Below, one piece after another: positions 17,853 through 56,700 of a DNA stretch of 64,000 bases. The notes under the pieces are model-generated. The model ran no database searches, was not told where the DNA came from, and saw only the letters and a list, made by a program, of their open reading frames with translations. Both the position numbers and the translations under genes were made by a program. Position 1 is the first letter of the stretch, and every line of letters begins with the position of its first letter. The stretch is from NCBI GenBank assembly GCA_002189035.1, contig NEEC01000007.1:3286001-3350000 (forward strand), read 5' to 3'. The stretch is from Utricularia gibba (lineage: Eukaryota > Plantae > Magnoliophyta).

Positions 17853-18666
17853 CCATTTCTTGTGTTTTCATGGTATATTCAAACTGCAATATATTGGCGC
17901 TTAGAGTCGTCGCCCCCTTGAAATCTGACGCAAAGATCCCAGCAGCATTTATTTTGCAGATTGGGGAATTCCTGGTTTCTCAATGGCAGTTGAACCAAAC
18001 CACGAGCATATGTCGAAGCCTGCCTGCCTGCCTGGTCTGAAAATTCATGGATGATGAGGAAAATTAGGGCATCTCAAATTTTATTATTGAAATTTTCTTA
18101 TATTTGATTGGTTCAACTTCATAATGTACTTACTACGCGGCTATTGAAAGTTTCTTTTTACATTTAAAAAATGGAAACTCAAATTGGATTCCGACCAAAC
18201 CGCATTCTCAAACCAGTTGCATCTTGTGTCTGATCATTCTGAAAATAGTACGAACATCGTCCTGAGCAAAGTTTATCTTCCGAATAAAAATAAAACAATG
18301 ATAATATTAATGAATTCTGAACACCTTGAATTTTTTTATCTCATCTGGGGTTTTTGTAAAATCAGCATAAAATGAAAGTCAAACAGTGTTATGATAAATG
18401 AAGTTTGCGTCAATACGTCGGCAGGATGAATCACATGCAGAAGTGGCTTCAGCCGCAGCTCCTCGACTAAAAAAAAAAAAAAAAAGCCTACCGTTTCACA
18501 TTCGAATTCGTGCTTCTGACCTTTGTTTTATAAGGTCTACTTTGATGGTGACGTTGAAGGTGACTCAGACCATCTATATAAACAAAAACAAAACCGCTCC
18601 AGAGTCCAGAGCATCATCCTAAACTATCATAAGACAACAGAACCAGGAGAAGGAAGGGAAGGCGTC

Positions 18667-19053
18667 ATGAGCACTCACAACAGCAATAACGCCCCCACCA
18701 AGTACAACGGCGTTCGCAGCCGCAAATGGGGCAAATGGGTCTCCGAAATCAGGGTCCCCGGGACCCCAGACCGTCTCTGGCTTGGAACCTACGCTTCTCC
18801 TGAGGCCGCCGCCGTTGCCCACGACGTCGCACAGTATTGCCTCCGTGGCGACGCCTCCCCGCAACGCTTTAATTTCCCGTTGGTTCTCCCCGCCGGTGCC
18901 CGATTCGGGTTGTCGCCGAGGACGGTGCAGAGGGTGGCCTCGGAAGCCGGGATGGCGGTTGATGCTCGTTTGCAGGGTTCAAAGCAGATGTATGGGGGAA
19001 GCTACTCCGGTGGACCGGAGTCTCTCGATATCTCCGTTGATGATTACCTCTAG
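18667..19053 (+). CDS. Small intronless AP2/ERF transcription factor, DREB type (ERF019/ERF020-like), 128 aa
   Basis: AP2 domain KYNGVRSRKWGKWVSEIRVPGTPDRLWLGTYASPEAAAVAHDVA, then LSPRTVQRVASEAGMAVDA and terminal LDISVDDYL. The longer ORF from 18523 is probably 5' UTR read-through. Confidence 0.92.
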   Translation: MSTHNSNNAPTKYNGVRSRKWGKWVSEIRVPGTPDRLWLGTYASPEAAAVAHDVAQYCLRGDASPQRFNFPLVLPAGARFGLSPRTVQRVASEAGMAVDARLQGSKQMYGGSYSGGPESLDISVDDYL

Positions 19054-28218: not shown

Positions 28219-30243
28219 ATGGTCGACCTTGATGATGACGGTGGAGACACCGACTCGAGTGAGGATTCTGAAGCCCCACCAACAAATGTTTGTGAGGACG
28301 AAGCACCAGAGACCGGAATTGAGGCACCTCGTGCAGTACAATTGCCCGGATCTCGCTCTCGACGATTCTCTGGGGTGTTTCGTGAGGGAGGAATACCCTC
28401 TATCCAAAACAATCCGGTAAACACTTTCGTATCCGAAGAATTTAAATATGGTGGCAAATATAGGCGATAAATTGGGAATTGCATTTACTAGTAAAGTTCT
28501 GCCCACTATCATATAAAACGAGGATATGAATTCATTGTTCCTATTAGTCAGCCCACATTCTGGGAGGGCAAATGTGCTCGTGCTAACATGGATCCTAAGT
28601 GTTATTGGCGCATAAGGATTATGCGATCTGCACGTGATGGAGTTTGGTAAGTATCGGTCTATGACTTTCCACATACTTGCATGACATATATGGATGGAGC
28701 GCAACATCGCAACCTTTCTGGTTTATTCATTGGATATGAACTTATGCATACTGCACATAGAGGAGGTATAGTTTAAATATTTCTTAATTTTTTTAACATA
28801 GTTTATATTTTTAATAACTTTTCTTTTTTGTAGAGATTAAGGTTGCAGATGCTCGAAAATGTATTTTTGAGAAATATCAAAAGAAGATTACTTATGAACG
28901 TGCGTGGTAAGGTGCTCAACTTGCTTTTGAGTTGGTCTATGGAACATGGGAATCATCAGTGCAAAAACTACCTGCATTATTTTTGTCAATCACGCAAGCC
29001 AATCCGGGTACAGTGGTCTCATGAGACTGCTTTCCCACTATTACAGGAGATGATCATAAAATCATGCACTATGTTTTTTGGGCCTACGATCCCTTTATTC
29101 GAGCATTCAAGTTTTGCAGGCCTATTGTTATGATTGATGCCACCTTTTTATATGGACGTTATGACCACAAGTTGCTCGTGGCCACTACTAAGGATCGAGG
29201 TGGTCACATCCTACCATTAGCTTGTGCATTTGTCGACAAGGAGAGTAGAGATGCATATCTTTGGTTTATTGATTTGCTAGATGAGCATTTTTTTTGTTGA
29301 GGCCAGGGTAGTATAATCTCGGATAGAGCTGCAGGCATCCTTGCAGCTGTGAGGAATTACGTTGGGTTTCAAGAAGGCCGTCTGACCCACTTTTGGTGTT
29401 TGCGTCATTATGTTTCCAACTTCAACAAGAAGTTTGGAAGCAAAATACTTAAGCAAATGGCTTACAACGCCGGAGCAACATGTGATCCAAGAAAGATGAT
29501 GATGTACCTCGAACAAAAGAAAAATCCAATGGCTTATGCATGGTTCTTTGAGCCGGAAAATGGTCCATATGAGAGATGGGCACTCTCATATGATTCTGGC
29601 AGACGCTACGGGAATCTAACTTCTAATGCAACAGAGATCATGAACAACGTTCTCAAGGTTTGCCGTCGGTTTCCCTCAGATACAATTGTTGAGACTACGT
29701 TGTACAAGTCAGCTACCATCCTCCGCGAGCGTAAAGTGGAGATCACCTCGAAGACAGAAAACCACCAGGTATTATGTTTGAGGTTACTTAATTTCGAATA
29801 TTTTTAATGTTTTATTATTTTACTTTATGTATAGCACTTGTTATCTGTGTGTGGAGGCGCTCTCAGATGAGGCAAAACGTTTTTGGGATAGAGCACGTGA
29901 ACGAGCTAAGACACACAAGGTGCGTCAATTCGAGACGGCGAATATGTCATTTCAGATTGAAGTCGTCAGCCGTGGGAAAGGGAGACGCTATCGTTATAGA
30001 GTGATGCTTTGTGATCAAACTTGTAGTTGCGGAAAGTGGACTAAGTATGGTGTTCCATGCTCTCATGTTGTTGCTGCTGCTGAAGAGGTTTTCAATCCTC
30101 TTGACTCTGATACCTATGTCCCTTACCCGGGCTGGACCATATACCATGATCCTACACGCCGTCGGACTATTGTTGGCAGACAACGTCGCACAAGAATACA
30201 CAACGAGATGGATTGGGGAGTGAATCCACCACCAGCAGAATAG
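28219..30243 (+). pseudogene. mudrA: MuDRA-like transposase, disrupted by several stops
   Basis: MULE domain (FWAYDPFIRAFKFCRPIVMIDATFLYGRY...LPLACAFVDKES, FWCLRHYVSNF, TSNATEIMNNVLK) and SWIM finger CSCGKWTKYGVPCSH. In-frame stops near 28468, 28488-28492, 28648 and 29298. Start approximate. Confidence 0.88.
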
Positions 30244-30378
30244 TCTGATAAATTTGGTTTTTTATGGTTTGAACTTTGATTAATTGCTAGTTGGAGTTAT
30301 TTATTTTGGATATTTTATTTATTGTTGTTTTCAAACTACTTTCATAAAAATAGCTTATTCGATAACAACAAAACACAT

Positions 30379-32422
30379 CTACTCATGCCTACGCTGCCGT
30401 GATGATGATGGACGGGTCGCATCATGTGGACCACTATATGGTGGTGGAAATGGGAATCTCCAATACCCATGTCCCCTCCTAGCACTAGACTGGCTCGATC
30501 CTGCATGGGGCATCATGAATTCTGAGTAAGGAGGCGGCCAAGGATATGACGGAGTCATAGCTAAGAGTGGTGGTCGCATATAGGAAGAAGGAGCCTCGCA
30601 TGTTGATGGTCTACTCGTTGGTGCCGCATACTGCTGAAGCAACTCTGCATTGAAATCCTCATATGCTTGGTCCATGTGGACCTGTGCAGGGTCATCATCA
30701 CTAGGTAGCGGTGAGTGATGTGCCACGAGTGACTGGCTCCATCCAAGCTGTTGGCTAAGACCCTCATATGCCCATGTTGCTTCTTGATCCTCAGCACGAA
30801 ATCTATCTAGCTGTGCGACCTGAAAACAAACAAGATATCAGAAATAAGTTGACACGATCTAACTCATATTTGCACAAAGGATTATTTTACCGCATAAGCT
30901 ATCGGCTCTGCATCTCCACCTCGATATCCATCACCCTTCTCTCGTCTTCTTCCAAGATACAACAATGCATGCGGCCTATACCAAGTCATGTACGCCGCCT
31001 CAGACACTGTAGGGATGTCATACATCTGGAGAATGTGAGTGTGCCTAGATGTCCACAAAGCTATACGTGCAGCATGCTCCAACGTCCAATCAGTATCGTA
31101 GGAGTCTTTGGTAAACTTATGTTCTGCAGGATATCGATCTGGAGGGAGTGGAATAACACGGCCACATCCAAATTGACGAGAAACTCGATCAGGGCACTGG
31201 GGCTCCACTCGAGATGCATATATCATCGGACCGGCATACTGCCAAAGCATAGGATCACATTCCGGAACACACATTAAACGTATATCCTCGTAAGGAGTCC
31301 ACTCAAACTGTCCAAGAAACAATGAAATGTCTGTCATGACAATATCCACGGTTCAACGAAAAATAAATTTATATGAAAACAATGTACCTCGTCATCCCCG
31401 CAAACCAAATCAAGTGTGTCACAGATTGGTTCTAACTTGTGGGAGACCACATTTGAGTGGTCGAGCCAACCTTCAAACCTCCAACCATTCACGGACGGTT
31501 TAAACCCCTCGCCCTCCCAATATACATCATGTGGGAAATGACGCTTCAGTATAGGACGTAGAGATGAGATCTGAGTATATGCCCACAGCTGCATAAAAAA
31601 CATTATAATATGATAAATTTTAACGTATATAATACTAATAGGGAAATCAAGAAATTGAACCTGAAGAAGACGATGGGCACCACCCATTGTAACTCGCCTA
31701 AGCGCACACAAATCAAGCTCGCGATATAAATTCGCTAGGACAGTTGTCCCCCAACTAGTAGTCATCCAACGATCTTGATCTGCCATCCAATCAAGGACAC
31801 TTAACTTGGCACGGTTACCGGTGGAATCCTGGAAAAAAACCCCACAACAGACTAATAGTACCATCGCACGAGCAAAACGTACAACTTCCTCCTCAAGAGT
31901 CTCCGCTGTGATACCAATATATGTATCATCAATGTATGTCTGAAGACCAGTCATAATGAACTGTGAATCACCAACAATGAAGGTCTCCTCAGGCTCCCAT
32001 CCAAAGTGTTCGACACATAGTTCATGCCATTCCTGTGTTGTGCGTTTTGTGCGAGTGTGAACCATCGGTATACCATCAATACGAAGACCCCACAGCATAG
32101 AAACATCTTGGAAAGTGATCGTGGCCTCTCCACATGGTAAGAAGAAGGTGTGCGTCTCTGGACGCCATCTCTCAACTAAAGGTGTGAGTAAATTGGGGTC
32201 TGGTTCCATTCGTAATGTCTTAAGAACTCCATAAAAACTCCAATCATCAAGATATCTTGCAGTCCTCTCCTCCCATGATCTGCCTGCCAGGAATTTGTAG
32301 CTATGTTTGAATTGCATCGTTTTACGATCTGATCCCTGTAATAGACCATAAGTAATGTGTTGTTGCTGCATATCCAATAGGATCGGATCCTCAGGACCAT
32401 GAACTCTTAAACGTGACGACAT
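30379..32422 (-). CDS. Plant Mobile Domain (aminotransferase-like, MAIN/MAIL-related) protein, 4 exons, 606 aa, apparently intact
   Basis: Exons 32422-31661, 31588-31388, 31307-30891, 30819-30379, with phase-0 GT-AG introns and no stop or frameshift. PMD motifs LVERWRPETHTFFLPCGEATIT, WGLRIDG, SWGTTVLANLY, LLQLWAY, FEWTPY and PDRVSRQFG. Confidence 0.88.
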
Positions 32423-38054: not shown

Positions 38055-40543
38055 CATTTCGAAGCAAGGGAGTAGGGCTTTATTCAGTAATAGAAATTCA
38101 AGCACCAAGTAGAAAATTATGAATTCAAAAAGATTGGACTCAAAAATCAATTTCTGGGGGTTGACATATTTGAAAGGTTTTAAAAAATAAACTCATAACA
38201 TACTACTCCCATCTCCAAACCAATAATATCTTTTTGAAACAGAAACAAAGGATAAAAAGATGTCATGTTAAGCATACCTCATGAATCATAGCCAATCGGC
38301 ACATAAAAGTTATGAAACACATAGAAGCACATATTTGCACATAGAACATAGTACATAAATTGAGAACCCATCATCCCGCTTACCTTTGTCCAAATTGAGT
38401 CCTTTCAAAGCCAAACCCTTCGTAAACGTCTACGCTATAAGCTTGAGAAGTCTCGTGAATTTGAAACCGCTACACAGCTCTCAGCAAACCAAACATTACA
38501 ACGGTGCAAACTGTTTTTATGATATCCATGTAAGCAGATCTCCCACATTTTCCTCTTTTCCAAAAATGCTTTTCCTTTCATCTATGCTCCTTTTATAATG
38601 TTAGTCATGCTTATCTATAATTCCTCTAATTGAGATACATGTCACCACAATCAAAACACATTGCATTTTCTTAGTCTGCATGAAACACATGTCATCATCC
38701 TATTAAAACACGTGGTGCTCTCTGATTGGGCATACTGCATTTTATCTGTGTTATCGTGAGCTAATTAAAACACATGGCGCTTTCTAATTGGTCATGGTTA
38801 CATGTATGATCTTTCTCTATTCTACCTTTTCTTTTCCTCTTATTCTAATTCTAGTTTTGAAATATCACATTCTTCCCCCCTCAGACAAAGTTTTGTCTCG
38901 AAACTTGTTCATGAACTCAGGGTACTCTTTGAGTAAAGCATCTTTGATCTCCCGTGTTGCTTCAATTTCACGATGATTACTCCATTGTACCTTTATCATA
39001 GGAATAACTTTATTCCTCAGCTTCTTCTCTTGCCTATCTAATAGCCTAATAGGTACTTCCTTGTAGGACAAATTCTCTGTTAGACTCTCAGGTACCTCTA
39101 TCATGGTGTCTCTTGAAGTGTCCATACACTTTTTGAGTTTAGACACATGAAACACATTGTGGATCCTTTCCATCTCTATTGGCAATCTTAGCTGCTATGC
39201 CATGCTTCCAACCTTCTTTTCTATCTCAAAAGGTTCAAAATATCTTGGTGCTAACTTATGTGTTCTTTTGAATCGAGATACACCTTTCATTGGAAAGACT
39301 TTTCAATTAAACCAAATCGCCCTCCTCAAAGTTTAATGGTCTCCTTCTGAAATCAGCCCAACTTTTCATTCTATCTTGTGCCATATTTGGGTTGCTTTTA
39401 ACTATAGCCACCTTATCATTTGCTATCCTGACTAGCTCTGGTTCTGTTAGTTGTCTTTCCCCCACTTCATCCCAACCTAAAGGTACTCTACATTTCATAC
39501 CATATAAAGCTTCATAGGGTGACATCTCAAGACTAGATTTGTAGCTATTATTGTAGGCAAATTTAGCTAAGGATAGAAAATTTTCCCAACTACCTCCAAA
39601 TTCAAGAATGCTAGCTCTAAGCATATCCTCCAATATCTGGTTTACCGTTTCAGTTTGACCATCAGATTATTGGTGGAAAGTAGTTCCTAGAGCTTGTTGT
39701 ATGCTCTTCCAAAATTTTGAAGCATACCTTGGATCCCTATCTGATGTGATTCTCACTAGTACTCCATGCAACCTTACTATTTCACCAATATATAGTTCTG
39801 CTTGTTTATCCAAGGAGTTAGTAGATTTTACAATAAGAAAATGAGCTAGCTTTGGAAGGCCAACAATGAAATCCATGGTGATGTGATCCCACTTTCATTC
39901 TAGTATCTCTAAACACTGAAGTTCACCTCCTGGCTTTTGATGGTCAGCCTTCACCTTTTGATAGACATCACATCTTACAACATATCTTGCAATATCCCGC
40001 TTCATAAGCCACCACCAATGCTTCTTTAAGTCCCTATACATTTTGTTTCCACCAGGATGTACAAAAAATGCAGAGTTATGTGCTTTCACCAATATCCTGT
40101 GTCTCAATGAATGAGCTTCAAGAACAAACAATCTTTTCCCAAACCTGGTGAGTCCTTCAGATATCTACACTTGTTGCTTTGCTTTAGTTAGTGGCTTCTT
40201 CCATTTCAACTAATGGATCATTTTCTTGAGATCGTTGGACCTCATCAAAAATACTTGGAGTTGCTAATATAGCAATAATCACCATATCACTAGACTCAAT
40301 TACTTCCAAATTTAACCCCTCAAATTCCTTGACTAAGCATACTGCTCATCAACCCCTGTTTCCTTCTACTTAATGCATCAGCAACCATATTTCCCTTCCC
40401 ACGTGGATACTTCATATCAAGATCATACTTCTTTATTAGTTCAAGCCATCTTCTCTATCTCATGTTTAGCTCCTTTTGTGTAAATAGGTATTTCAGTGAC
40501 TTGTTGTCGATATATAACTCACATCTCACCCCATACAAGTAGT
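38055..40543 (-). mobile_element. Tekay/Del-type Ty3 element, 3' part (RNase H end, integrase, chromodomain, PPT, 3' LTR)
   Basis: [27 protein letters not shown]; HPGGNKMYRDLK zinc finger; ITSDRDPRY; IHNVFHVSKLKKC...IKVQWSNH. PPT at 38870-38882, then LTR starting TGTGATATTTC at 38869. Confidence 0.9.
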
Positions 40544-40558
40544 TGTTAGGTTTTACAG

Positions 40559-40730
40559 GTGGGTTCGGTTCCGAACTATCGGTTCCAAAACCACAGTTCG
40601 CTGTGGGCAATAGTTCCGGTTTCAGTTCGGAACCGTATCCCGAAACCTTGAACCGAACCGAAACCGGAACCGAGATTTGCGAACCGAAACGTAACCAGAA
40701 CTGATCATTTACTATTTGTAGGTGTTTTTC
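40559..40730. mobile_element. hAT-type subterminal region rich in AACCG/CGGTT motifs
   Basis: GGTTCGGTTCC...GAACCGAACCGAAACCGGAACCG cluster, as in Ac/Tam3-family ends. Lies on the 3' side of the hAT transposase at 45600-47485. Confidence 0.65.
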
Positions 40731-41366
40731 AGGCACCCATTTGAATCATTGTATATGTTTGTCATTGAAATTTTTAATAATTATTAATTTTTTAATATTT
40801 GGATATTGTCAAACAATATATTTAAAAATATTAATTTTTGTATTTAATTAGATATATTATGTAATATACTATATTAATTTATAAAAAATTTTAACTTAAA
40901 TTACTTGATAAAATACCTCAATAAAGTATAATTAAAATCAATATAATTTATGACTTAAATAAATGAAATAAATGATTAAATTATTAACATTTGAATATAT
41001 ATTTGATAAAATTAAATTTTTTAAAACAAATACAACAAGATTATAAATCATATAAAATGAATAGAGTTATTATTTATATATTTATTTTTTAAAATGAAGA
41101 TGTTTATATAGTTGTTTTATATAATCTATTGTAAGTATTGTGTATTTTATTTTATAAAAACATTATAAATAGATTATTTATTTATAAAATGAATAGAGTT
41201 GTATTTTTTAAATTAAAATAAAAACATTATTTATTTTATAAAGTTTTTCCAAACTTCATATATTTTGAAAACAAAAAATAAGAAGAATTAAATAGATTAT
41301 ATTTTCAAAATTAACATCGCATATTTTACGTCTCTTTTATGGAACGGTTTCTAGACAACCTTAATA

Positions 41367-41584
41367 ATCGTTAAGAGTGTTCAGGCTCTAGAGAAGATCC
41401 CAAGCACCTTCAATAACGTATCAGAGTGCCTGGACAACCTCTAACCATAACCCTAATTCTAAAGTACACGCTACCTTCGTTAAGGGTATCCAAACTCCAA
41501 AGAAGATCCCAAGCACCCTCAATAATGGATCAGAGTGCATGGACGACCTCTAACGACAACCCTAATTCTGAGGTACATGCTGCT
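41367..41584. repeat. 109-bp tandem repeat x2
   Basis: GAAGATCCCAAGCACC at 41393 and 41502; CGTTAAG at 41369 and 41478. Confidence 0.85.
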
Positions 41585-41802
41585 GAGGCATTAGAGGCAC
41601 CCTTAGAAATCATTATACTTGCCTCCAAGATTGATTTAAAGGATCACTATTCACTAGAACATATTTCACACGATGCATATGGGAATTTAACGAATTTAAC
41701 ACTAACAACAACATAATTGTCTATTAGAAAAAAAAAAGTCATCAACATAAATATTCCAACTACAACATAAGTGTTCAAAAAAACTAATATTAGAGGCTCC
41801 CT

Positions 41803-44083
41803 CTAACAATCTTGTAGGCATGCATAATACTTCCATAAGGCATGTCCCTCACGTATGGGAGGCTGTCCTATTCGGTTCTCATTAACATAACTTGGAATAT
41901 CATGAGCATACCATAACCCTTCAAGGAAAGTCCGCATTTCACCATCAACATTTAGTGATACATCATCCCTATTAGTATGCGAATAGGGACTTGGAAAAAC
42001 AGCATTATTTTCCTAAAAAATTAAGGGTTAGTTTTGATGTATAACCAAGTTTGGTTTAGAGTAGAATAGCAAAATGACTTACCGGATTGTTCATTGACTT
42101 GTGAGGCGAATCATCAATCAATAAGGTATTGTAACGGTCATATCTTGTGTTTAATCTATTGTTGACAGCCCATACCCGATTCAACTCCTTCATGTAGACC
42201 GTGTTGCTAGGATTGTTGTGAACATGTACACATGTGTCCGTAGTCATCGTTTGATCCCACACAAAAATTAGTTTATCAAATAACGAAGGTGGAAAGACCC
42301 ATTTAGTGATTGCTTGTAGCTGCTCCCTACAAAATAAATCAATTGCAAGAATTGACACCATTCTAAATACCAACAAAAAAAAAAATGCAACACACGTACC
42401 CACCACAAGATGACCATAAGGCTACATCAAAATTATCCAAACACCACTTAATAAAGTCACGGGCATATGGATGTAGAAAGATTGCATAAATTACACCAAA
42501 AATTACCTATGATATTTCACAAATCTTGGATGCATATAACACACAAAAATAAGTGTTGTCTTAGTACCTCATCAGCCATATATAATTTTATCTGGAGGAT
42601 TCATGACCTTGACGGTCCAGCCCTATACACGATGTCTACGAGCACACCATTGACATCCAAGATTATCAGCTTTCGTTGAGGTTCAGAGGCACTCAAAGAC
42701 GGTCCGGTATACGCCCGACGGCTCTCATAGCAATCCAACTTGTAGCGAAGCTCTTCATTCTCCGTTGTTATAAATTCAAGTCTCTCATCCACATCATTGA
42801 GATCATGTGTGAGCTCGTCCCCTTCAACATCATTACTCTCTTGTATCCTCTCATTCCTAAACAAGTCTTCATTCTTTTGGGATACTCTAGGATTCTTCAA
42901 CACACCACACCAATAATGTTTTGTCCCCGGTGCATCCACAAATGGTGGTAAAATGTCAATAAAACTCCTTTGCATACTTGAGAAGAGGAGTATAAGATCT
43001 TGTGCATCCCTCTTCTGCAAGGTGTCAAATCCTATAATAAAAGTAAATTTATTAACAATAGATTGAACAAAAATATTCAATATGAGTAATTTCGATAAGT
43101 TTAAACTTGAGAGCAATAAATTGAATGCACATATTCGAAACGGGAATTGAATAAAAATATTTAATAACACTAAACTCTATAAATATATACTCAATGAGAA
43201 TAGATTAAAAAATATTCAATAAAAATAGATTGAATAAAAATAGATAAAAAAGTATTCAATAAGAATATACCGAATAAAAATACTCAAAAAAAATATCTTT
43301 CAAAAATATTGAATAAGAACAGATTAAAAAAATCAACAAACAAATTTAATTAGATTAGATTGAATAAAAGTAGATTCTGAAAAATATTCAATAAAAACTA
43401 GATTTAATAAGATTAACTTCGCTAAAAATATTCAATAAAACTATTCAATAACAATAGATTTAATAAGAGTAGATTAAAAAAAACACTCAATCATAATACA
43501 TATAAACATTCAATACAAATATTTAATAAAAATATTCAATTATAATATGGAATATTTTTATTCATCTTTCTTCTAGCAATACAATGAAAGATTTACTTTT
43601 TACCTTGCCTGCTTCACTCGAATTAGGATGCATTTAAAGAAATTTGGTTCCCATTGGAGGACGTATCCAAATAAAGTTTGTACACCATTCCTCAAATCCT
43701 TCACTAGCACCAACCTTTTTTTCTCCTTTAAGGTGTAGTGGTTCTTATTTAGAGCCCTAGAGCATACACTCACATAAAAAAAAATAACGAAGTTCCACCT
43801 CAAGAGATAACTCCTCACAAATACTCACAAAAGCCAACACATATGAGATAGATCTTATAGTGAAATGAGATAAAAGAATCTCTAAATATTCTAATATTTC
43901 TTCTAAAAAGGGCAATAATGGTAAGCGCAAACCACAACGAAAATGCTACGTGCTTAAGGCAAATCCCATTGGACCCACACGGTTAGGAATTTCACTCTCA
44001 ATCAACTCATCCGGTTCTTTGTCTCAAATCTCATATTTATTCGGTATCAAGAATCTAGTTTTCAATTTTTCAGAAGTGTACAT
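41803..44083 (-). pseudogene. Spliced gene combining a Transposase_28 (TRP28)-like region and an FCP1/NIF (HAD-family CTD phosphatase-like) domain; disrupted
   Basis: 44083-43780: HFRCGLRLPLLPFLEEILEYL...VLAFVSICEELSLEVELRYF. 43014-41803: KLIILDVNGVLVD, FLHPYARDFIKWCLDNFDVALWSS, KLIFVWDQ, YMKELNRVW, NTLLIDDSPHKSMNNP and GEMRTFLEGL...NRIGQPPIREGHALWKYY. Contains stops, a frameshift near 42614 and one acceptor that reads AA instead of AG. Confidence 0.75.
43040..43560. repeat. Degenerate AT-rich minisatellite (AAAATATTCAATAA / TAGATTGAATAAAA units) filling an intron
   Basis: About ten imperfect recurrences of AATATTCAATA and TAGATT(G/T)AATAA within the 43603-43015 intron. Confidence 0.7.
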
Positions 44084-44834
44084 CTACAAAACACCCATAG
44101 GTATTGTATAAAAAATCAAATTACAATAATTGGACAAGATATTTCAATTTGGAACACAGATCAGCTATCCATAGTGGAAAATAAATTACTTACCTTGTTT
44201 AATTTAAACAACACTCCAAGTAGGTGGTGGGACTATGGGGGTGTCCGGTCACTTTCGTCTACGGGGGAGGGGAAAGAGGTAAGAAAATTTTCTTACCAAA
44301 TGGGTGGGGATTAGGGTTGTCTTAATTGAACACGTGGGGAGTGGGTAAAGTGGGGATTGGGGTGGTGATGTGTAGTGCTGTGTATGGGTGCATGGAGAGT
44401 TGGTTTAATTACCCAAATCATGAGGTAATGATTACACGCAATGTGTCTCTAGGTTTGTAGGTTGTCAGTAATTACTTTTGTTGTTTTCAGGTGAGAAGTG
44501 TCGCTCGGTTGAATCGACGCGAACCCACTATATAATTCTTTTAGAAGTGATGTTTAATTACTCGAATTTTGAAGCACCCAGAGTCGCTAATGTGGGCGAC
44601 TGGCACCGTAACTCGTAAAATTGTATTATCTAGGCACCTATACCCTAATATTTGGGAATTGCGCAATTTTGAAAGAAGACTTAATTTTCAAAAATATAAA
44701 TTTTTTTCGTGTATTAATTGAAATATAAAAAATTGAAAGTGAAATTCTTTAATATATCCTAAATATTAAATCAAATGTTAATGAAACATTGAAATAAAAT
44801 TTCAGTAAATAAAGAATATTAATCTGTCACTTAG

Positions 44835-45450
44835 ACCATTTTCCAGACACCCACATTGTCTCGTGGGTGTCTGGAAAGATAGTAGGATACCCTTTTCCAG
44901 GCACCCACAATGCCTCGCGTGGGTGTCTGGGAAGAATGGGTAAGACCATTTCTAGGCATCCATATTTGCTCATATGGGTGTGTGGGAAGGGGTGTTTCAG
45001 ACAGTTTTTTCTAGATACCCACTTCCCTCATGTGGGTGCCTTGGAAGGGTGTCTACGAGTGTGCAACCATATTCCAAGCACTCTATCTTTAGCAATGATA
45101 AGGATCGAATGCATTATTTATTTTAATAAAAATATAGCACTATATCCTGATGTTCAATCCTTATGTTTGCAACCATATTCCAAGCACCCATATTTGCTCA
45201 TATGGGTGTCTGGGAAGGGGTGTTTGAGACAATTTTTTCCAAACACCCACTTCCCTCATGTGGGTGCCTTAGAAGGGTGTCTACGAATGTGCAATCATAT
45301 TCCAGGCACTCTATCTCTAGAAACGATAAAGATTGAATGCATTATTTATTTTAATAAAATTATTGCACTCTATTCTTATGTTCTATCCTTATATGTGCAA
45401 CCATATTCCAGGCACCTATATTTGCTCATATGGGTGTTTGGGAAGGATGT
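44835..45450. repeat. Array of palindromic TTCCAGRCACCCA...TGGGTGYCTGGAA units, organised as a 228-bp tandem repeat (~2.2 copies)
   Basis: Perfect 15-bp-arm palindrome at 44840-44877. CATATTTGCTCATATGGGTG recurs at 44961, 45189 and 45417 (period 228). Confidence 0.9.
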
Positions 45451-45599
45451 ATCCAAAGGTTTCGATAAGTGCCCGAATCATATAATTTTAATGAAAGTCA
45501 TGAATACAACGTACTATTACAAAGTAATTGTAATTCATGGAGCACACAATGTTTTCAAATTAGAAGTCTTCAATTTCATCTTCACTTGAACTTGAGGAT

Positions 45600-47485
45600 A
45601 ATGTTCAATTTCTTTTCAATGCCTCTAGCCAATTCTTTAGACAAATGCATGCCTCCATAGTCTCTACGTTCAACTTGGATCACTTGTGATTAACAACTTG
45701 TCCCCTACACTAAATGCACTTTCGGATGCTACTGTAGATGTTGAAGGTGTTAGAAGATTTTTGGCCATTCTAGCCAAGATATGGTAAGTAGTAGAATTTG
45801 TCTTCCACTAATCCAATATATTAAAGTTTTCATCATCAACACCCTCAACAATAGGAGTATTATTGTAAATTGTAATTTGGTCAAAAGAATTTAATGAAGA
45901 TGATGAAGAGGGTGACACAAATGAGTTATGTTTTCTACGAATAATGTCCATCGGATTGTGACCGCCAAACATCGAATTATTACATGTTTTAGGAATAGAA
46001 ACACTAAGATCACTATATTTACAAGTATAAAGGGAATACATGGCACGTAAAACATTGTTAGCATCAACATCTATTTTTTCACAATTTTTAATGGAAAAAG
46101 CAACATCATCTACACTAAATGACTCTCAAATGTATTCAAGTAATGTTTTCACACCTCTAACTTAACCCGAGAATCCAAAATAGGTGCAATAAGAAACAAA
46201 TGTTGGATTTCATCAAAATATTTCAAAAACTTATTTTTCATATTTTGCACTACATCTCCCAAAAAATCACAATCAGTTTGATGATCATAAAAAGCAAACG
46301 AAATTTTATAAATACATGAAAGCATAAGTTGAGAAGTTGGATAATAAATACCACTCAAAATTTTAGTACAAGAATAAAATGTTTCTAATAAATTTACTAA
46401 ACCTCTTATTTTTTCAAAAATAGAATGAGTCAAGAAATTGAAACCCATAAAACATTCACAAAATTCAATAAGAACATTTTCATAAGGAATCAAAAATTGT
46501 AACATGTCATATGTAGAATTCCATCTAGTTGGACACTCATTTTTAAATTTTTGATAAGAGATATTTCTTTCTTGACAAATCCTCTTAAAATCATCTCTTT
46601 TATTACGTGTAGTTCTTATCATACTAACTAAATCACGAATAAGAATTAAAAAAATTTCACATTCTTTCAAACCATTTTGAACACACAAATTTAAGATATG
46701 GCAAGTGTACCTAGTGTGGAAAAAAAGGCTATTCAACATAGGATTCATGCTACTTTTCAAAATGCCAATAGCATTTGTATTTCCAGACGCATTATCCAAA
46801 GAAATAGAAAAAATCCTATCAGATATTCCATAAAATGTTATGACCTTTTCAATAATTTTAGCAATAGAAAAACCATTATGTGGTAATGACCATTCTTGAA
46901 AAGCTAAAATTCGTTTTTGTATACATCAAAAACATGTAATAACAATATAACTCTCATAGTTACAACCTTTCCAATCATCACAAGTTAAACAAAAATTACA
47001 TTGTAGAGATTTAAAAGTAGAAATTAAAGAGTCACGCATGTTTTTAAAATCCTCAAGTGTCATATGATGCGTGGTTTTCCTAGTAAAATTTTTGTATCCC
47101 GGTTGAGCTTGTTTCAACATATCATTAAAATAAGGTTTTTCAACTAATGAAAAAAGAAGTTCATTAAGTATCAAATAACGCACCACACTTACTTGAAAAA
47201 GTTTATAATTAGAAACAAAATTAGATAATCCCACACTATTATCACCCCTAAATATAGTTTAGTTTGACGAAATTGAGGTAATTTATCATTATGCTTCTCC
47301 CTAACATGCCTCTTATATGAATCGGTTCCCCAAACCTTTTTGAAAGTATACTCTTTACCACAATGTTTACAAGAAATTTTTTTGGGATTAGAAATAACAA
47401 AATGCTCTCTAACATCCAAAGAATCATCACTAGTATTTTTTGATCTTTTACGACACAGGAGACTTGATGAGGTAGAAGAACCCAC
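45600..47485 (-). pseudogene. hAT transposase (BED finger, DDE core, dimerisation domain), frameshifted
   Basis: KKISCKHCGKEY...GTDSYKRHVREKH; CLTCDDWK; MDNASGN; YTCHILNLCVQNGL; CPTRWNSTYDML; PSTSTVASESAFSVGG. Confidence 0.9.
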
Positions 47486-48487
47486 TTCTTGAGGATTAGA
47501 AAAATCATTATGTTTGGGTAAGGGACCACATTCAAGCTCTTGTAAAAACTGAAGGTCTTTTCCAAAAGAAAATTCTCTATCATTTTCAAAAATGCAAGGT
47601 ATAGCAGAATCAGCTTAAGAAGTTTGAGAAGAATTTTGTAAACCAGACCCCTTCATTTTGTAAAAAATAAAAAAATCTGTTACCCTGCAGACCTCACCAA
47701 TGTCGACCAAATGGAAATTTGAGACTTGAGAGTATCTCCAATCACGAGTTATATGTAAAAGTTGAAATAGAATTATTTCTGGTAATGAGTGATGATACAA
47801 TAAGAGAAAGTAATGCAAAACTATAAGATAACCATATCATATATATAGACAAATTTTTTATTAAATTAATAGCAATTGTTACTTTCAAAACCATGTGCAA
47901 CTCCACAGTGTGCACAGTTACAAATGCATATACTAACCATTGAGATTAATATATGCATAAAAAATATATTTTAAATATGATGTTGCCACAGTAGTCTTCA
48001 CATGAGTATTTTAAATATATACTTATGTTTAAATATGCATTGTGTTACCAATATGGATAAATTAGTAACCTTGGAAACACATAACTAGTTATTGAGAAAA
48101 ATATGTAGGTAATGAAATATTAAAATATTTATTTGGTTGAACTATCAAAATTATTCATAATTTTGAGTAATTTAGTAATTTTCTACTAAGGTTACACATT
48201 TTATATTTATTAATCTCACTCTAATTTTATAATTTATAGTATACACTCAATAATTATTCATAATCGTTTATAAATAATTCATATACATTTATTGAATATT
48301 TGGTATTGTTACATTTCACTGGATTTATTATGTAATATACTATGTTAATTTATAAAATACCTTAATTTAGAGTATTTTGTAAAATACCTTAATAAAATAT
48401 AATTAATATCAACATAATTAGTGACTTAAATAAATGAAATAAATTATTAAAATGATAAAATTATTTTTCGAGAAATTCAAAATACAG

Positions 48488-49861
48488 ATCTTGGAATATG
48501 GTATACATTATATAAAGAGACACTACGAATACTTTTCAATGGACTCTAATGTTCACCAACCGCCAACAGTAAATGGCCTCGATGGTACGTGAAGCACTCC
48601 GTCGATAACTTTATCAAGGCAGCAGGATGATGATCAATCTCCTCAAGTGTTATAGAGAAAATCGCCCCCTTACATATCAATATCAGAGAGAATGAAGATA
48701 TGAAAATCTCTGTGGCTCGAATCTTTTGATAGATATTTGGCAACATATCTAATCAAATCTCCATAAAGATCTTATCTTGTGTAGATATATATATGTTCCA
48801 AATCTTATCTATATCAGATCTTTTATTTTGAGTTTAATCAATATTAATCTTAAAATAACTCTCTATTTAATTTATCCACTTTACCAATTACATCTCATGT
48901 AATTGTGTCATTCTATTTTATATCAATGAGTGAATCCACTATTATGTATGACTCTATAGGCTTTTTCAATCAAGGCCGTAGTAATGGATTTATTAATTAA
49001 ATATTAATTAATTAAATCCATCATTATCAATCATGAGTTATGTGTAGCAACATATCATGATCCCCAAGATGTAAGAATAATCAGGTGAATTGATTGAGCC
49101 TTTCTATGACCAGCCACCATGCAATGAACAACTTTCATCATTCTTATATTTCATTCCATATTAGAACATGGGTGTGTGTCTTTCTGATGTATCGAACTTA
49201 TAATTGCATTTAAACACTAAAACTCAATGACCTACTCAAACACTTCGAGTGTCATTACCCTAAGCCTAGGACTTACTATTAGGCTTTGATGCAATTACTT
49301 GAGATAATATCTCATAGCTAACATGAGTGATGAATCCTTTATTGTTTAATCAATTATCTCCAACCTTAAAGAGTCACATCCCTTGTAATGAGCGAAAATG
49401 CAAGCTTAAGATCAAGACAACTTTGTTGACCTCAGGTCTAAGCTTACTTGCATGGCTGTCATATTCAATATCTTGGTACTAACACTTGGTTAGCTTCCCA
49501 TAGTAGCATCTCGAGGACGAGTCATCTAGCGAATTGATTCTCTAATCGAAACCCACACATAGGCTTTTGTAATCTCATTACATCAATTGCAAGAACTATT
49601 GCCTAAACAATTTAGGGAACTCAATGTGTGCCATATTATCCGTATTTGTGATATCCTCATTTCACAAATACTCTAGTCAGGGAATTTTTAACTTGAACAT
49701 AAATGTTTGAAGAATCTCACATTATGATCTTATCATAATTTCTATACCATATAGATCAAGTAGAGGATTTTATCATTGATATAAATTTGATCAAAATTCG
49801 AAATAAATATCAAAAGATAAAATTTATCAATGAGTTTATTGTCTCTAGAACGCATACATCA
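48488..49861 (-). mobile_element. Angela/BARE-like Ty1 solo LTR, main part; its last 15 bp are stranded at 40544-40558
   Basis: Minus strand starts TGATGTATGCGTTCTAGAGACAATAA, resembling Angela LTR starts, and ends ...AAAACCTAACA at 40544. Flanks GTAGT (40539-40543) / ATAGT (49862-49866). No coding sequence. Confidence 0.65.
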
Positions 49862-51662
49862 ATAGTACTGCCTCTAGATTTTCAAAGCAAAAACAACTAC
49901 AACTAGTTCCAAGTCATGTGTAGCGTAATTCAACTCATGGGTTTTAAGTTCCTAGATGCATAGACAATTACTCTATCGGTCTATATCAGCACACATCCAA
50001 GTCCTTGTTTGGAAGCATCAATATAGATTACAAAATTATCTCCTTCTGGAAAGTAAGGCTCACACTAGTGTTGTAGTCAATCTCCATTTCAACATGTTGA
50101 AACTATTGTCACAAGCTTCACTCCATACAAATGGTGCATTCTTCCTTGTTCAATTTGTCAATGGCTGAGCAATTTTAGAAAACCCTTCTACAAACCTTCT
50201 ATAGTACCCTGCCAAGCCTAGGAAGCTCCTAATTTCCTTAGCATTCAAAAGTCGAGGCCATTGAGCCACTGCAGAAACTTTCCCTGGATCAACTTGTATG
50301 CCTTCAACTGAAACAATGTGACCAAGAAAGCTGTGCTATTCAGCCAAAAGTCACACTTGCTGAATTTTGCATAGAGTTGCTTTTCCCTCATTAGATTATC
50401 ATCCTCAAATGCTTGCCATGAGTTCCCTCATTAGGAGAGTAAACTAAAACGTCATCAAGAAAGACCGCAACAAACTTATCCAAGAATGGTTGAAAAATCC
50501 TATTCATCACAACCATAAAAACTGCGGGTGCATTTGAGAGTCCAAAGGGAGCCACGTTACATTCGAAATGTCCATATCTAGTCCTAAATGCAGTCTTTGG
50601 TATATCATCTTGTTTAACCCTCAATTAATGATATCCTGACCTCAAGTCCAACTGAGAGAATACCCTTGCTCCTTGCAATTGATCAAATAAGACATGTATC
50701 CTTGAAAGAGGGTATTTATTCATTATTGCAAGCTTGTTCAATTCCCTATAATCATAGCACAATGTAAACTCCCATCTTTCTTCTTTACAAACAAAACAGG
50801 AGCACCCCATATTGATGTGCTAGGCTTAATATGTCCTTTTTCTAATAAGTCTTGCAATTGCATCCTTAACTCCTTTAGTTCTTGTGATGCCATTCGGTAT
50901 GCAGCCTTGGCAGCTGGTTTTGCCCCTAGAACCAATTCTATTCCAAGCCTAGTTTCCCTTTTAGGTGGTTGTCTAGGTAGATCTTCAAGAACAACATCCT
51001 GATACTCATTAACTACTAGAATGTCTTCTATTTTCTTTTCATGTTTTTCTGTCACAATGAAAACTAGGTAGCCGCAATCCTCCTGCTTCCCTTTTCAGTA
51101 CACCTAGCTACTTTGCTCCTAAGCTCCACAACTATATCTCCTATTTGTAGCTCACTTACTCCACAATTCAAAACAACTCGATGCCTCATTAACCAATCAA
51201 TACCCAGAATTACATCAAAGTTCGCCATATCCAACTCTATTAAATCTACTGGAAACTTCTGCCTCTTAATCACCACTTCACATTGACCGTATAGTTTTCT
51301 AGACTAATGTTTCCTCATGTGCAGAGGAGAGGACAATCTAAAATAAACATCTATTCCTATTCTTCCTAGAGCTCTAGCAAAATTCTTGGAGACAAAAGAA
51401 TGACTAGTAACACTATCAAATAAAATTAAAGTAGGCACATCTTCTATAGGAAATGTATCTATCATTAGTTCTTGCCCTTGTTCAGCTGCATCCTCCTTTG
51501 TAAGTGCAAAGGCCCTAGCTCTTGTTTGTGGTCTCTCCTTTCTTTGATCCTTGCTTATTCCAATTCCAAGCATTTGAGAACAATTCTCAGCATTATGTCC
51601 TGGTTTCCCACAGTAGAAGCATAACCATGTCCCCATTCTACACTCACCCCTATGTGGTTTAG
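49862..51662 (-). mobile_element. Tekay/Del-type Ty3 element, 5' part (zinc knuckle, protease, RT, RNase H start); continues at 40543
   Basis: CFYCGKPGHNAENC; LILFDS; DFDVILGIDWL; DYRELNK...KYPL; LDLRSGYH; [12 protein letters not shown]; FLDDVLVYS; NYATHDLELV. Confidence 0.9.
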
Positions 51663-52469
51663 TCAAGGAATTCTGACAGTGATGTAGTACTTGGAGAAAT
51701 TCCAAGAATATTATAGGTATGCCTCAAAGTGGATGGCTGATGAGGATGAGAAGGTCTTCAAGTTCAGGAATGAACTCAATGATGGGATTCAAATGAGCTT
51801 AGCTGGTCAATAGGTAAGTTTAATGAGTTTGTAGCTGCGGCAGTGAGAGTGGAAGCTGAGTTGAACAAGAGGGAGCAGGTTGATAATGAGAGGCCTAGTT
51901 TTGATCAACCAAGATGGCAACCAATTGTGAAGAGACCTTTTAGACCAAAAAATGGGAAGGAAGGAAATCACATGCCACTAGGAAACGAAACTATCTATCT
52001 AAAATGTTCTAAACCACATAGGGGTGAGTGTACAATGGGGATAGGGTTATGCTTCTATTGTGGGAAACCATGGCATAATGCTGGGAATTGTTCTCAAATG
52101 CTTGGAATTGGAACAAGCAAGGATCAAATAAAGGAGATACCACAGACAAGAGCTAGGCCCCTTGCACTTACCAAGGAGGATGTAGCTGAACAAGGGCAAG
52201 AACTCATGACAGATACATTTCCTATAGAAGATGTGCCTGCTTTAATTTTATTTGATAGTGGTGCTAGTCATTCTTTTGTCTCCAAGAATTTTGCTAGAGC
52301 TCTAGGAAGAACAAGAAGGGATGTTTATTTTAGACTGTCCTCTCCTCTACACATGAGAAAACATAAGTCTAGAAAACTATATGGTCAATGTGAAGTGGTG
52401 ATTAAGGGGCATAAATTTCTAGTAGATTTAATAGAGTTGGATATGACGGACTTTGATGTAATTTTGGGT
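51202..52469. repeat. Long inverted duplication: 461-bp arms (51202-51662 / 52009-52469) around a 346-bp gag spacer
   Basis: Both arms encode the same PHRGEC...CFYCGKP...LILFDS...DFDVILG peptide on opposite strands. 4 mismatches in a 62-bp sample. Confidence 0.93.
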
Positions 52470-53783: not shown

Positions 53784-56700
53784 TGTTGCATTTTTTATAG
53801 CACACAAATTTTCATGTTTTTAGGATATGAAAATCATGAGTTTTTAATTATGTTTAGTTGTTTATTTTATAATTTTAAGTATTTTTATATATAATTTAGG
53901 GAAATGTGATTTTTGGTGTGTTAGTGGGCTAAATCCTTTGATTTAGCCCACCCATGTTCTAACCCAATTTTGAGCCCAGTAGCTACCCGAAAATCATGGA
54001 AAAGTCAAGTATTTCGTGTAAGTTACCACGTAGCAGGAAGTAATGAATACACTATCTCGACAACAGTCTACAAGTTAGGGGTAGGAGCAGAAGAACTGTC
54101 AGAGAATGTACTTGACTTTATTACTCTAGGCCTGTGAACAGTGGCAGATGGAATCCAGGACCCTTATTACTTTACTTTAGTTTGTTGATGTTTTCAGTTT
54201 CTGCAACCAACAGTTGCACGATGTTCTTGACATTTTCGTTGTTTTATATTAATATCATTATCTTTTACCTTCCAAATATGAGTAGCTAAAACCCTAGGAG
54301 TGCCTTAAGGTGAAGCATGGTGGTGTGGGTCTAGAAATCTTAATAAAATTCACCATTGTTTCTTAGCTCTTGTTTCTATCAAACCATGGGTAGACCTAAT
54401 GAGAGGAACAAATAGCTTCACAACTTAGATGCTTGGTTTAGAGGTACACCAACAAATCAAGACGAGAGCAATAGGTGTTAGTCTGGGATAGAACTAGTAG
54501 AATCGGATAGACCTAGTTCTATATGCTTTGAATACGGGTAAATGTAATTGCAATGTTGGTGATGATATGGGGGATTAGTTTAGCCGAAAATATGATGAAT
54601 GACCTGGGTAAACTTAGGTTATTTGAAGTTGTGAATGTAGGAACATGGTAGACTAAATTAAGGATTTTGGCACTATACCACCTGCAAACTCTTAAGGCAC
54701 CTTAGTATTATTCTGAGTTAAAACTAGCACTTGTTACCTCTAGCGTTTAGACCTAATATTGTTTACTGATCTTTTTTACCGAACTTGTTTACCACTGTTG
54801 GTCTGAGCTTAAACTCAGACCCACAATTATTTCGAATTCTGCATCTGCTTAGAATATATTGCAAGCACCAGCTTCTTGTGATCGACCCCGACATCTACTA
54901 TACAAGTTTTCTAAATTTGTATTTTGTGTAGATTAGGCCTTATAAATTTATTTGATACAGAAGTTTGCTTTTATTGCAACGATATGCTAAAATTTTCCGT
55001 TTATCAATTTTTTTTCAGAACTGATTTGAAGAAAATACCAAGGAGCGGTAGAGAATAGCTCACTTTAGACCAAAAAAAGTTCAAGTCACCCCATTGGTTG
55101 CTAGGGTTGAGATACAGTTTAAATATGTTCCATAATTCATGCAGAATTATGTGTTGTTGGCCCAATTGAAGCTCAAAACCTAAATATGATCAGGAAATGA
55201 TCGAAGTTTGCTGCAAAAAAACTTCAGCTCCTCTTGAGCGCATCTAACTTGCATCCATCCTATGTTCCTTCAGATGTACATCGCTCCTCCTGGGTTTCTA
55301 ACTGAGGAAGACATCCAACACTCCCTGGGTCTTCCTCAAATTCAAATTTCACCAGTTCAAAGATGTTTAATATGTCGATTTCAGATCTGAATTTCTCAAA
55401 AGGAGTCTTTCCAAGAGGCTTTGTAAGGATGTCGGCATGTTGCCCAATACTCTCTACATATCAAATTGTAAGTCTGTTTTTTTATTGCATCCCAAATTGT
55501 ATGAAATCATACCTGAATATGTTTGGCCTTATGAATTGCGATGAATTTTTTGCAATCGATATTGCAGCCTTATTGTCCCTATAAAGAGCTATAGGTGTTG
55601 ATTGATTCGTCTCAATTTCCTCCAGCATCTGGCGAAGCCACAATGCCTGATTTGAGGCTGAAGAAGTGGAAATATATTCTACTTCCACCATGGATTGAGC
55701 CACTACAGCTGTCTCTTTGTATTCCATGAGAAGGGACTTTTGTTCAGGTAGAAAATATATCCTGATGTGGTTTTGCAATTCGTGCTCCAAGCATAATCAC
55801 TGTTGCAGAAACCTGATATTGTAAGTGGTTCATTCTTTGAGTAGGGGTAAAAAATACCATAGTCCAATGTTTTCTTGATGTAACGCAGGATTCATTTGGC
55901 TGCAGCAAAGTGGGACACTTTTGGAGCCTTCATAAATCTGGAAAGAATATTCATAGAGTAGTACAAATCAAGTCTAGTGTGGGTGAGAAAAATTAGGCTG
56001 CCAACCAAGTTTCTGTAGAGTGTAGGATCCACGTCTGTCTCATCAAATGAGTAATCCAAAGATGTTTTTGATAGAACATGAGTGGGACTTCCATTTGCCT
56101 CGTCCATCTTAAAGTTCTTGAGTGATTCTTGTGAATATTTTCTTTGACATAAGAAAGTGCTTTTTGTAGGTGCCTGCATGATTTCAAGGCCTAAATAGAA
56201 ACGCATCGGTCCCAGGTCTGTCATTTCAAATTCTCCCTATAATTTTGCTTTCAAATCATTCATAGAATGACTGTTGCTTGAGGTAATGAATAGGTCGTCC
56301 ACATATATGCTCATTAGTAGTTTCTGTCCATTTTCCTCTTTGTAAAATCGGGTCTATTCACTATGAGTTTGGATGAAGCCTTCGGATTCAAAAAATCGCA
56401 TAATTCTTTCATTCCAAGCTCTTGATGCCTGTTTCAAATTGTACAAGGCCTTTTTCATTTTCAATATTTTTTGTTCTTTGTGTTTGATTTCATAACCTTG
56501 TGGCTGCTTGTAGTAAATGACTTCAGTTAAAACACCATTCAAAAACGCTGTTTTTACATCCATATGATGGACTGGCCAGCCATAATGAGTTGCAAGAGCC
56601 TGCAACAGCTTCATAGTATCAAATCTAGACATAGGTGCAAACACTTGACTATAATTCACACCATGTATCTGGGCATATCCTTTTGCTACTAACTTGGATC

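Follow-up and report, generated by a model that had tools for sequence, protein, structure and literature searches.

We asked whether the DNA between positions 41803 and 44083 of a 64,000-nucleotide stretch of the Utricularia gibba genome (contig NEEC01000007.1; the whole stretch is hereafter called the window) joins a TRP28 (Transposase_28) domain, of the kind carried by plant retrotransposons, to an FCP1/NIF-type phosphatase domain in one gene, and whether this gene is the cargo of a hAT transposon, as an initial annotation made from the letters alone had proposed. The evidence described below favors, with a probability of about 0.72, a five-exon accessory gene, decayed in this copy, that shares its mobile unit with a hAT transposase. 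The ancestral protein would have been ∼495 residues long, comprising the TRP28 domain, a lineage-specific acidic helical linker and an HAD domain of the FCP1/NIF type. The locus itself is functionless now.

Rebuilding the gene model recovered the multi-exon minus-strand gene with all the features first described for it, and the coordinates 44083-41803 were found to coincide exactly with the start and stop codons of five joined exons (Table 1). These give a coding sequence of 1488 nt, divisible by three, with 495 codons and a stop. All four introns are of the GT-AG type, each ending in a pyrimidine-rich tract and AG; with exon 2 starting at 43014, behind the acceptor ttgcag, the introns are canonical throughout. 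The phases agree at every junction (0, 0, 2 and 0), and the phase-2 junction between exons 3 and 4 completes a Gly codon (GG + G). Retention of introns in the HAD part suggests that it was captured at the DNA level. An alternative frame is open at 43603-43824 (74 codons), but the exon-1 tail read in this frame had no Pfam match and clashed with the splice phases, and was rejected. A poly-T run at 43777 is one base shorter in about half of the sister contigs described below which, along with the open alternative frame, may point to a compensated frameshift pair in the exon-1 tail. Upstream, a putative non-coding first exon and an intron in the 5' untranslated region may lie at 44084-44400 (caag/gtaagt near 44188 ... 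ttttgtag/ATG), and a C-rich stretch with the telo-box-like motif AACCCTAA is seen near 44310.

The gene copy at 41803-44083 is dead. Six in-frame stops, at codons 20, 46, 109, 113, 150 and 298, interrupt the frame, and every one of them is a single step (C>T or G>A) away from CGA, CAG, CAA or TGG. Transition-type stops of this kind are what deamination of methylated cytosines leaves behind in a silenced repeat. The initial annotation had listed a frameshift and a mutated acceptor in addition to the stops; the stops stand, while the model with its four GT-AG introns requires neither of the other two lesions. Exons 2-5 contain one stop in 335 codons, as against ∼25 expected at 33% GC, and we therefore conclude that the frame was coding until recently. 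The window as a whole is AT-rich plant DNA with a GC content of 37%.

Five of the six stops fall in exon 1. This skew would be compatible with a chance juxtaposition, in which a stray Retand-type TRP28 fragment came to lie upstream of an unrelated NIF pseudogene, as would the fact that TRP28 is otherwise known only from Retand/Tat long terminal repeat (LTR) elements (PMC11963269, PMC6317226) and that Ty3 fragments flank the block. However, the phase-0 consensus donor of exon 1 meets a phase-0 consensus acceptor at exon 2, both parts share one strand, exon 1 opens with an ATG, and both parts are repeated to a similar extent. The flanking Ty3 pol, moreover, runs on the same strand as the gene, unlike the antisense arrangement seen in Retand elements. 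Chance juxtaposition is thus already disfavoured, and we consider it very improbable.

The TRP28 signature noted in the 5' exon passed the profile check. The stop-free piece 43760-43945(-) matched the Pfam profile PF04195 at 30.9 bits against a cutoff of 26.2 (E 3.3e-7, profile positions 6-61 of 69). Positions reported as conserved in TRP28 are G21, P25, L34, P46, N47 and F55 (PMC11963269). Reading by eye, we found the conserved G, P, L and F in G-L-R-L-P-L...I-L-E-Y-L...A-F-V. The presumed P46 position, matched by eye to PMC11963269, is Ile in this copy and Pro in sister contigs (43857/43858), and the presumed N47 position, also read by eye, is Arg in this copy. As the initial annotation had it, this domain is known from the extra open reading frames (ORFs) of Ty3 Tat/Retand elements, where TRP28 is the hallmark antisense ORF (PMC11963269; PMC6317226). 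In Retand elements it is predicted to bind DNA, no function has been assigned to it, and other known transposable elements are reported to contain nothing similar to TRP28 (PMC11963269).

The HAD part of the gene takes in the final 25 codons of exon 2 together with exons 3-5. Profile scans were made on stop-free exon pieces only, with a gathering cutoff of 21.8 bits for PF03031. Exon 3 matched this profile at 11.7 bits (positions 36-62) and exon 4 at 15.6 bits (positions 82-125); the two matches, each below the cutoff, are collinear, and their rough sum exceeds it. Among the ESM Atlas neighbours of exon 4, 99 of the 100 named belonged to NIF clusters, with a top score of 0.92 and 200 shared features. 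The HAD motifs follow each other in the order of the NIF profile (I-L-D-V-N-G-V-L, A-L-W-S-S, V-W-D-Q, M-K-E-L, L-I-D-D-S-P, and G-Q-P-P-I...W-K-Y-Y), and W-S-S in exon 3 as well as M-K-E-L and L-I-D-D-S-P in exon 4 lie within the stretches matched by the profile. Taken together, the support for a NIF-like C-terminal half, as judged from the sequence, is good but not formal. A WD40 chain, the sole match of exon 4 in the PDB, was rejected as a chance match.

Assigned by eye, the Ser of motif II, the Lys of motif III and the two acidic residues of motif IV are all present. Motif I reads D280-V-N282-G-V (42657-42643; D-V-N-G at 42657-42646). Its nucleophile D280 (42655-42657) is kept, and Asn282 takes the place of the acid/base Asp, so that the D-x-D of motif I is lacking. 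Of the complete HAD/FCP1 domain originally proposed, the motif order was therefore upheld and the full catalytic set was not. In Scp1-type enzymes, loss of the acid/base Asp blocks turnover of the phospho-Asp intermediate. With Asn at this position, full phosphatase activity of the domain is doubtful, and the intact protein may have bound or trapped its substrate rather than cycled. Asn282 is encoded by AAT, which a single G>A change would produce from GAT.

Between the two domains, exon 2 carries an acidic helical stretch (E-L-T-H-D...R-Y-K-L, 42736-42816(-)), in agreement with the charged, coiled-coil-like segment first reported. Pfam returned only weak coiled-coil matches for exon 2 (E 0.03-0.07), and an Atlas search with this exon gave only leads below 0.9, one of them a NIF protein. 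Scans of metagenome contigs with exon 2 and exon 4 yielded no confirmed locus.

We then considered the relationship of this gene to the hAT transposase pseudogene that lies 1.5 kb upstream on the same strand. The transposase has the RNase-H-fold core and the dimerisation domain of hAT enzymes, with matches to PF14372 (31.7 bits, cutoff 27) and PF05699 (22.3 bits, cutoff 21.4). A hAT protein of Genlisea aurea (50% identity) is collinear with 46712-45626 across three frames, which implies two frameshifts; the transposase is dead. Close homologues of it elsewhere lie on contigs under 2 kb, leaving their gene neighbours unreadable. The joint 42964->45708, which leads from exon 2 into the dimerisation region of the transposase, was found in two public sequencing runs (X3 and X4) from different studies. 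Run X3 also contains a 699-nt contig identical to 44906-45604, a part removed by this joint, which indicates that the joint comes from another copy or locus. Internal-deletion derivatives of this kind arise when gap repair within a single DNA transposon is aborted. Transposase and fusion gene thus occur together elsewhere, as one repeated unit.

On the far side of the gene, a hAT-type subterminal segment forms a candidate 3' end. Its CGGTTC/GAACCG-type motifs reach 19 hits in one 250-bp bin and are almost absent from the rest of 40-50 kb, and the joint 40672->40766 in sister contigs ties the segment to the AT-rich region next to it. The tandem arrays said to bracket the gene were recovered as a 109-bp repeat in two copies on its 3' side and a 228-bp repeat in 2.2 copies (44945-45446) between gene and transposase, with a further array of 13-15-mers inside intron 1. 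The 10-mer of the palindromic units within the 228-bp repeat occurs six times as against 0.12 expected, and these units may be candidate protein-binding sites. Tandem arrays are also found in the TRP28 regions of Retand elements (PMC11963269). Single arms of the CCAGRCACCCA/TGGGTGTCTGG type were seen at 40725-40739 close to the left flank and, inverted, at 48479-48502 close to the right end of the block. Comparing flank with flank, we found no inverted repeat, just an AT-rich direct repeat of 158 bp (40834-40991 and 48305-48462; 82% identical, 7471 bp apart) near both block ends, which may either belong to the structure of the element or represent a small dispersed repeat.

Contigs from four public runs were aligned to 40600-46500 (5.9 kb) at a likeness of at least 80%, in order to see how far the unit is repeated. 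Each run contributed 275 to 2725 aligned contigs, with all bins covered at likenesses from under 90% to over 99%, and the whole of 40.6-46.5 kb is therefore a many-copy repeat. The most frequent changes were C>T and G>A. In run X4, the sister-copy letter was present on 20-25 distinct contigs at each of four sites, in the left flank, exon 4, intron 1 and the transposase. These similar counts indicate that the parts are repeated to a similar extent and rule out a single-copy host pseudogene, in keeping with the many-copy family predicted at the outset, all parts of which the four runs cover at 80-99% likeness. No second copy was found within the window by tblastn or blastn.

The sister copies are less broken than the copy at 41803-44083. 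At the stop 43636, CAA replaces TAA in 20 of 20 X4 contigs; at 42603, sister contigs have CGA for TGA (with a loose end at 42598), and at 42407 sister copies turn a Cys (TGT) back to Arg (CGT). Intron 1 is shorter by 271-503 nt in sister contigs (joints 43082->43517, 43040->43544 and 43245->43517), indicating that its 13-15-mer array is expanded in this copy.

Several observations weigh against a decayed accessory gene within a hAT unit. No pair of terminal inverted repeats (TIRs) and no target site duplication (TSD) was found in three candidate spans, a systematic scan for both gave AT-rich chance matches only, and the cluster of hAT-type motifs is present at one end only; in addition, the partner of CAGGTGGGTTCGGT was not found in 47.6-50.2 kb. 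The copy may be truncated at its 5' or transposase end, or rearranged. None of the contigs listed bridges exons 1 and 2, which we ascribe to the low complexity of intron 1. The PF03031 cutoff is reached by no single NIF fragment, PDB sequence searches with exons 4 and 5 returned no NIF chain, and exon 5 had no recognisable relative in Pfam, the PDB or the Atlas. A 121-aa piece around exon 4 had no word matches among proteins of 67-212 aa, longer relatives being beyond the scope of that comparison; within this size range, annotated proteomes therefore contain no member of the family. Decay of GAT by a G>A change in this copy alone could account for the Asn of motif I. A full HMMER search with a 143-aa piece of exon 2 found no true relative of the linker among 1.84 billion proteins, and the linker is thus lineage-specific. 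The proteins of this genome itself are outside the protein collections searched, which accounts for the missing relatives and restricts the conclusions to be drawn from their absence. The stretch was present in no RNA run, and was found in DNA runs of one organism and in one plant metagenome. The sole HMMER hit of the linker (P0001), a repetitive F-box protein in which 38 residues matched in four repeats, was discarded as spurious.

The orphan linker, the absence from RNA runs, the death of both the gene copy and the transposase, and the missing acid/base Asp would all be accommodated if Pack-type transduplication had joined TRP28 and host NIF fragments within a hAT element, and the neutral chimera had then been amplified passively without ever being a working gene. 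Plant DNA transposons commonly capture host exons in the Pack-type manner (PMC8903248). Such a chimera, however, would not be expected to hold a full ATG-to-stop frame of 495 codons across four canonical introns, or a single stop in the 335 codons of exons 2-5 despite their AT-richness, and at least two of the stops are absent in sister copies. We therefore regard this explanation as unlikely.

The missing TIRs and TSD may also be read to mean that the fusion gene is part of an element of its own, which has CCAGRCACCCA-type palindromic arrays as its boundaries and merely lies beside, or nested next to, the hAT element. In line with this, CAGGCACCCA at 40730 (+) faces CAGACACCCA at 44873, 44929 and 45212 (-). 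On direct reading, however, no matching TSD flanks the CCAGRCACCCA-type motifs, and the motif is also a tandem internal repeat. The deletion derivative from another copy, running from exon 2 into the transposase, fits abortive gap repair within a single element, and the hAT-type subterminal segment lies on the side of the gene away from the transposase. A separate element is quite improbable. As to the original placement of the gene inside a hAT element, linkage to the transposase was supported by the joint in two runs whereas formal enclosure was not, and 'cargo inside hAT' is well supported for this copy but not formally proven.

If the gene was indeed an accessory gene of the hAT unit, its intact product would have acted in trans for the element. 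The TRP28 domain may have served as a DNA- or chromatin-targeting module, in line with the DNA binding predicted for it in Retand elements, and the NIF-like domain may have bound, or slowly dephosphorylated, a phospho-Ser/Thr protein; an Asn in place of the acid/base Asp would make it more a substrate trap than a fast phosphatase. The likeliest target would be the C-terminal domain (CTD) of a nuclear RNA polymerase, or a CTD-bound factor. The CTD-phosphatase-like effector, possibly anti-silencing, of the initial annotation found no support, given the Asn in motif I and the absence of the stretch from RNA runs. A more far-reaching version, which we consider rather unlikely, holds that several cut-and-paste superfamilies share and exchange a selected TRP28-NIF helper that binds DNA and traps, or slowly dephosphorylates, the CTD of RNA polymerase II, IV or V, or one of its partners, to the advantage of the element. 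Here, TRP28 would perhaps bind the palindromic arrays beside its own gene and tilt transcription or silencing toward the element.

We compared this gene with known systems. It resembles the TRP28 ORFs of Retand elements in its Pfam domain, which scores above threshold, in the conserved Gly, Pro, Leu and Phe as read by eye, and in the presumed Pro46 of sister copies; the tandem arrays that flank it recall those in about half of Retand POL-3'LTR regions (PMC11963269; PMC6317226). Unlike those ORFs, which lie antisense inside an LTR element, TRP28 here forms the first exon of a spliced five-exon unit, is fused to a NIF-like domain and adjoins a hAT transposase, and the same-strand Ty3 pol around it is interrupted by the block. 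The FCP1/SCP/CPL-type NIF phosphatases (PF03031; CPL and SSP proteins in plants, Scp1 and Fcp1 in animals and yeast) share with it the order of the HAD motifs, the Asp nucleophile, the motif II Ser, a Lys and the D-D-S-P of motif IV, in pieces collinear with the profile. They differ in having D-x-D rather than D-x-N in motif I, and the score of each exon here is below threshold. Its C-terminal exon and linker are unlike any annotated protein found, and the fusion gene is many-copy and transposon-linked whereas NIF phosphatases are host genes.

Accessory or captured genes are familiar in plant DNA transposons, and include VANC of the VANDAL Mutator-like elements (MULEs), the ULP1-like protease genes of KI-MULEs and CACTA elements, and plant mobile domain (PMD) genes. 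Like these, the fusion gene is a second gene beside a transposase, at least partly derived from the host and amplified with the element; unlike VANC, it is not known to have an activity. In Arabidopsis, PMD proteins are paired with PP7-like phosphatases (MAIN/MAIL1 with PP7L, and MAIL3), and this pairing is implicated in silencing of transposable elements. Here too, a domain associated with transposable elements is coupled to a phosphatase-like, possibly inactive domain, but the domains are TRP28 and HAD-type rather than PMD and PPP-type, and the gene is a repeat borne by a transposable element rather than a domesticated host gene. Pack-TYPE transduplicates (PMC8903248) are non-autonomous and carry pieces of host genes that lack a complete frame, whereas here a transposase is present in the unit and the cargo keeps its frame from ATG to stop together with four canonical introns. 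A full-text literature search of incomplete coverage found no paper that links TRP28/PF04195 with NIF/FCP1 domains or with DNA transposons, and none that describes the fusion, as the initial annotation had supposed. The family may be a kind of transposon accessory gene not previously described.

Coordinates of the gene, the transposase and the adjoining features are collected in Table 1. The block of ∼8 kb that holds gene and transposase appears to split a Ty3 pol, whose fragments on either side lie on the same strand as the fusion gene; the reverse transcriptase part of it is at 50150-51055 (RVT_1, 52.5 bits at 50394-50624). Between this and the RNase H-like piece of the right flank, ∼1.4 kb (48746-50150) without gypsy-like ORFs stands in place of the ∼0.2 kb expected, and is probably another insertion in the same pol. 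Ty3 gag-protease fragments at 51202-51662 and 52009-52469 form a head-to-head inverted duplicate with 92% identity across 461 nt. Further on, at 55892-58699, the minus strand carries Ty1/copia-type ORFs for pol and gag that are broken into several frames. To the left, MULE-type ORFs (+) with a SWIM-finger-like region (29827-30243) occupy 29349-32422, and an open PMD-like gene (-) is seen at 31334-32422 and in the ORFs downstream; no copy of the TRP28-NIF gene was found within this MULE/PMD region (29349-32422). Positions 1-23400 are the host gene part of the window, with a gene for a Gln/Pro/Tyr-rich protein (4282-5621), an intronless PPR gene of 437 aa (6233-7546; best matches in the Lamiales Sesamum, Paulownia and Erythranthe, ∼50% identity) and an AP2/ERF-type ORF (18523-19053).

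Table 1. Features of the TRP28-NIF-like pseudogene and its surroundings, by position in the window.
Feature	Position	Strand	Basis or remark
Ty3/gypsy RNase H fragment, left flank	40455-40547	-	PF17917, profile 65-93 of 105, 17 bits
hAT-type subterminal segment, candidate 3' end	40556-40700	+	Starts CAGGTGGGTTCGG; dense CGGTTC/GAACCG-type motifs (motif count)
109-bp tandem repeat, two copies, 3' of gene	41368-41581	.	Repeat scan; 84% identical
TRP28-NIF-like pseudogene, whole	41803-44083	-	5 exons, 495 codons + stop, 6 internal stops
Exon 5, F-L-E-G-L ... G-Q-P-P-I ... W-K-Y-Y	42012-41803	-	Open frame; 69 codons + stop
Exon 4, NIF-like core, M-K-E-L and L-I-D-D-S-P	42326-42083	-	PF03031 profile match; ESM Atlas neighbours
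Exon 3, NIF-like strand and motif II (A-L-W-S-S)	42506-42400	-	PF03031 profile match
Exon 2, linker, acidic helix and HAD motif I	43014-42568	-	149 codons; TGA stop 42603
Intron 1	43015-43603	-	AT-rich 13-15-mer array at 43146-43554
Exon 1, TRP28-type N-terminal region	44083-43604	-	160 codons; stops 44026, 43948, 43759, 43747, 43636
Transposase_28/TRP28 domain core	43781-43945	-	PF04195 above cutoff
Palindromic units of ∼50 nt (CCAGRCACCCA ... TGGGTGTCTGG) between transposase and fusion gene	44835-45449	.	Within 228-bp x2.2 repeat
hAT transposase pseudogene (BED-finger region, RNase-H-fold core, C-terminal dimerisation region)	45626-47589	-	PF14372, PF05699
Ty3/gypsy RNase H-like fragment, right flank	48546-48746	-	Read by eye; no Pfam match
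Sister-letter site, left flank	40808		X4 contigs
Sister-letter site, exon 4	42176		X4 contigs
Sister-letter site, intron 1 just 3' of exon 1	43566		X4 contigs
Sister-letter site, transposase C-terminus	45606		X4 contigs

The locus itself is one more dead copy of a many-copy family. Its value lies in corroboration, since it offers a clean exon model, less-broken sister copies and, in the form of a deletion derivative, a tie between the gene and a hAT transposase. TRP28 is present in nearly all recently active Retand retrotransposons, without a known function or reported relatives outside them. If the gene is indeed an accessory gene of a hAT unit, the range of elements that carry TRP28 would be widened to DNA transposons, a biochemical partner for this domain would be suggested in the form of phosphoprotein binding or turnover, and there would be a case at hand in which the sharing of an accessory gene among superfamilies of transposons could be tested. 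Should a helper shared among cut-and-paste superfamilies prove real, it would represent an undescribed class of transposon helper and give a first functional handle on TRP28.

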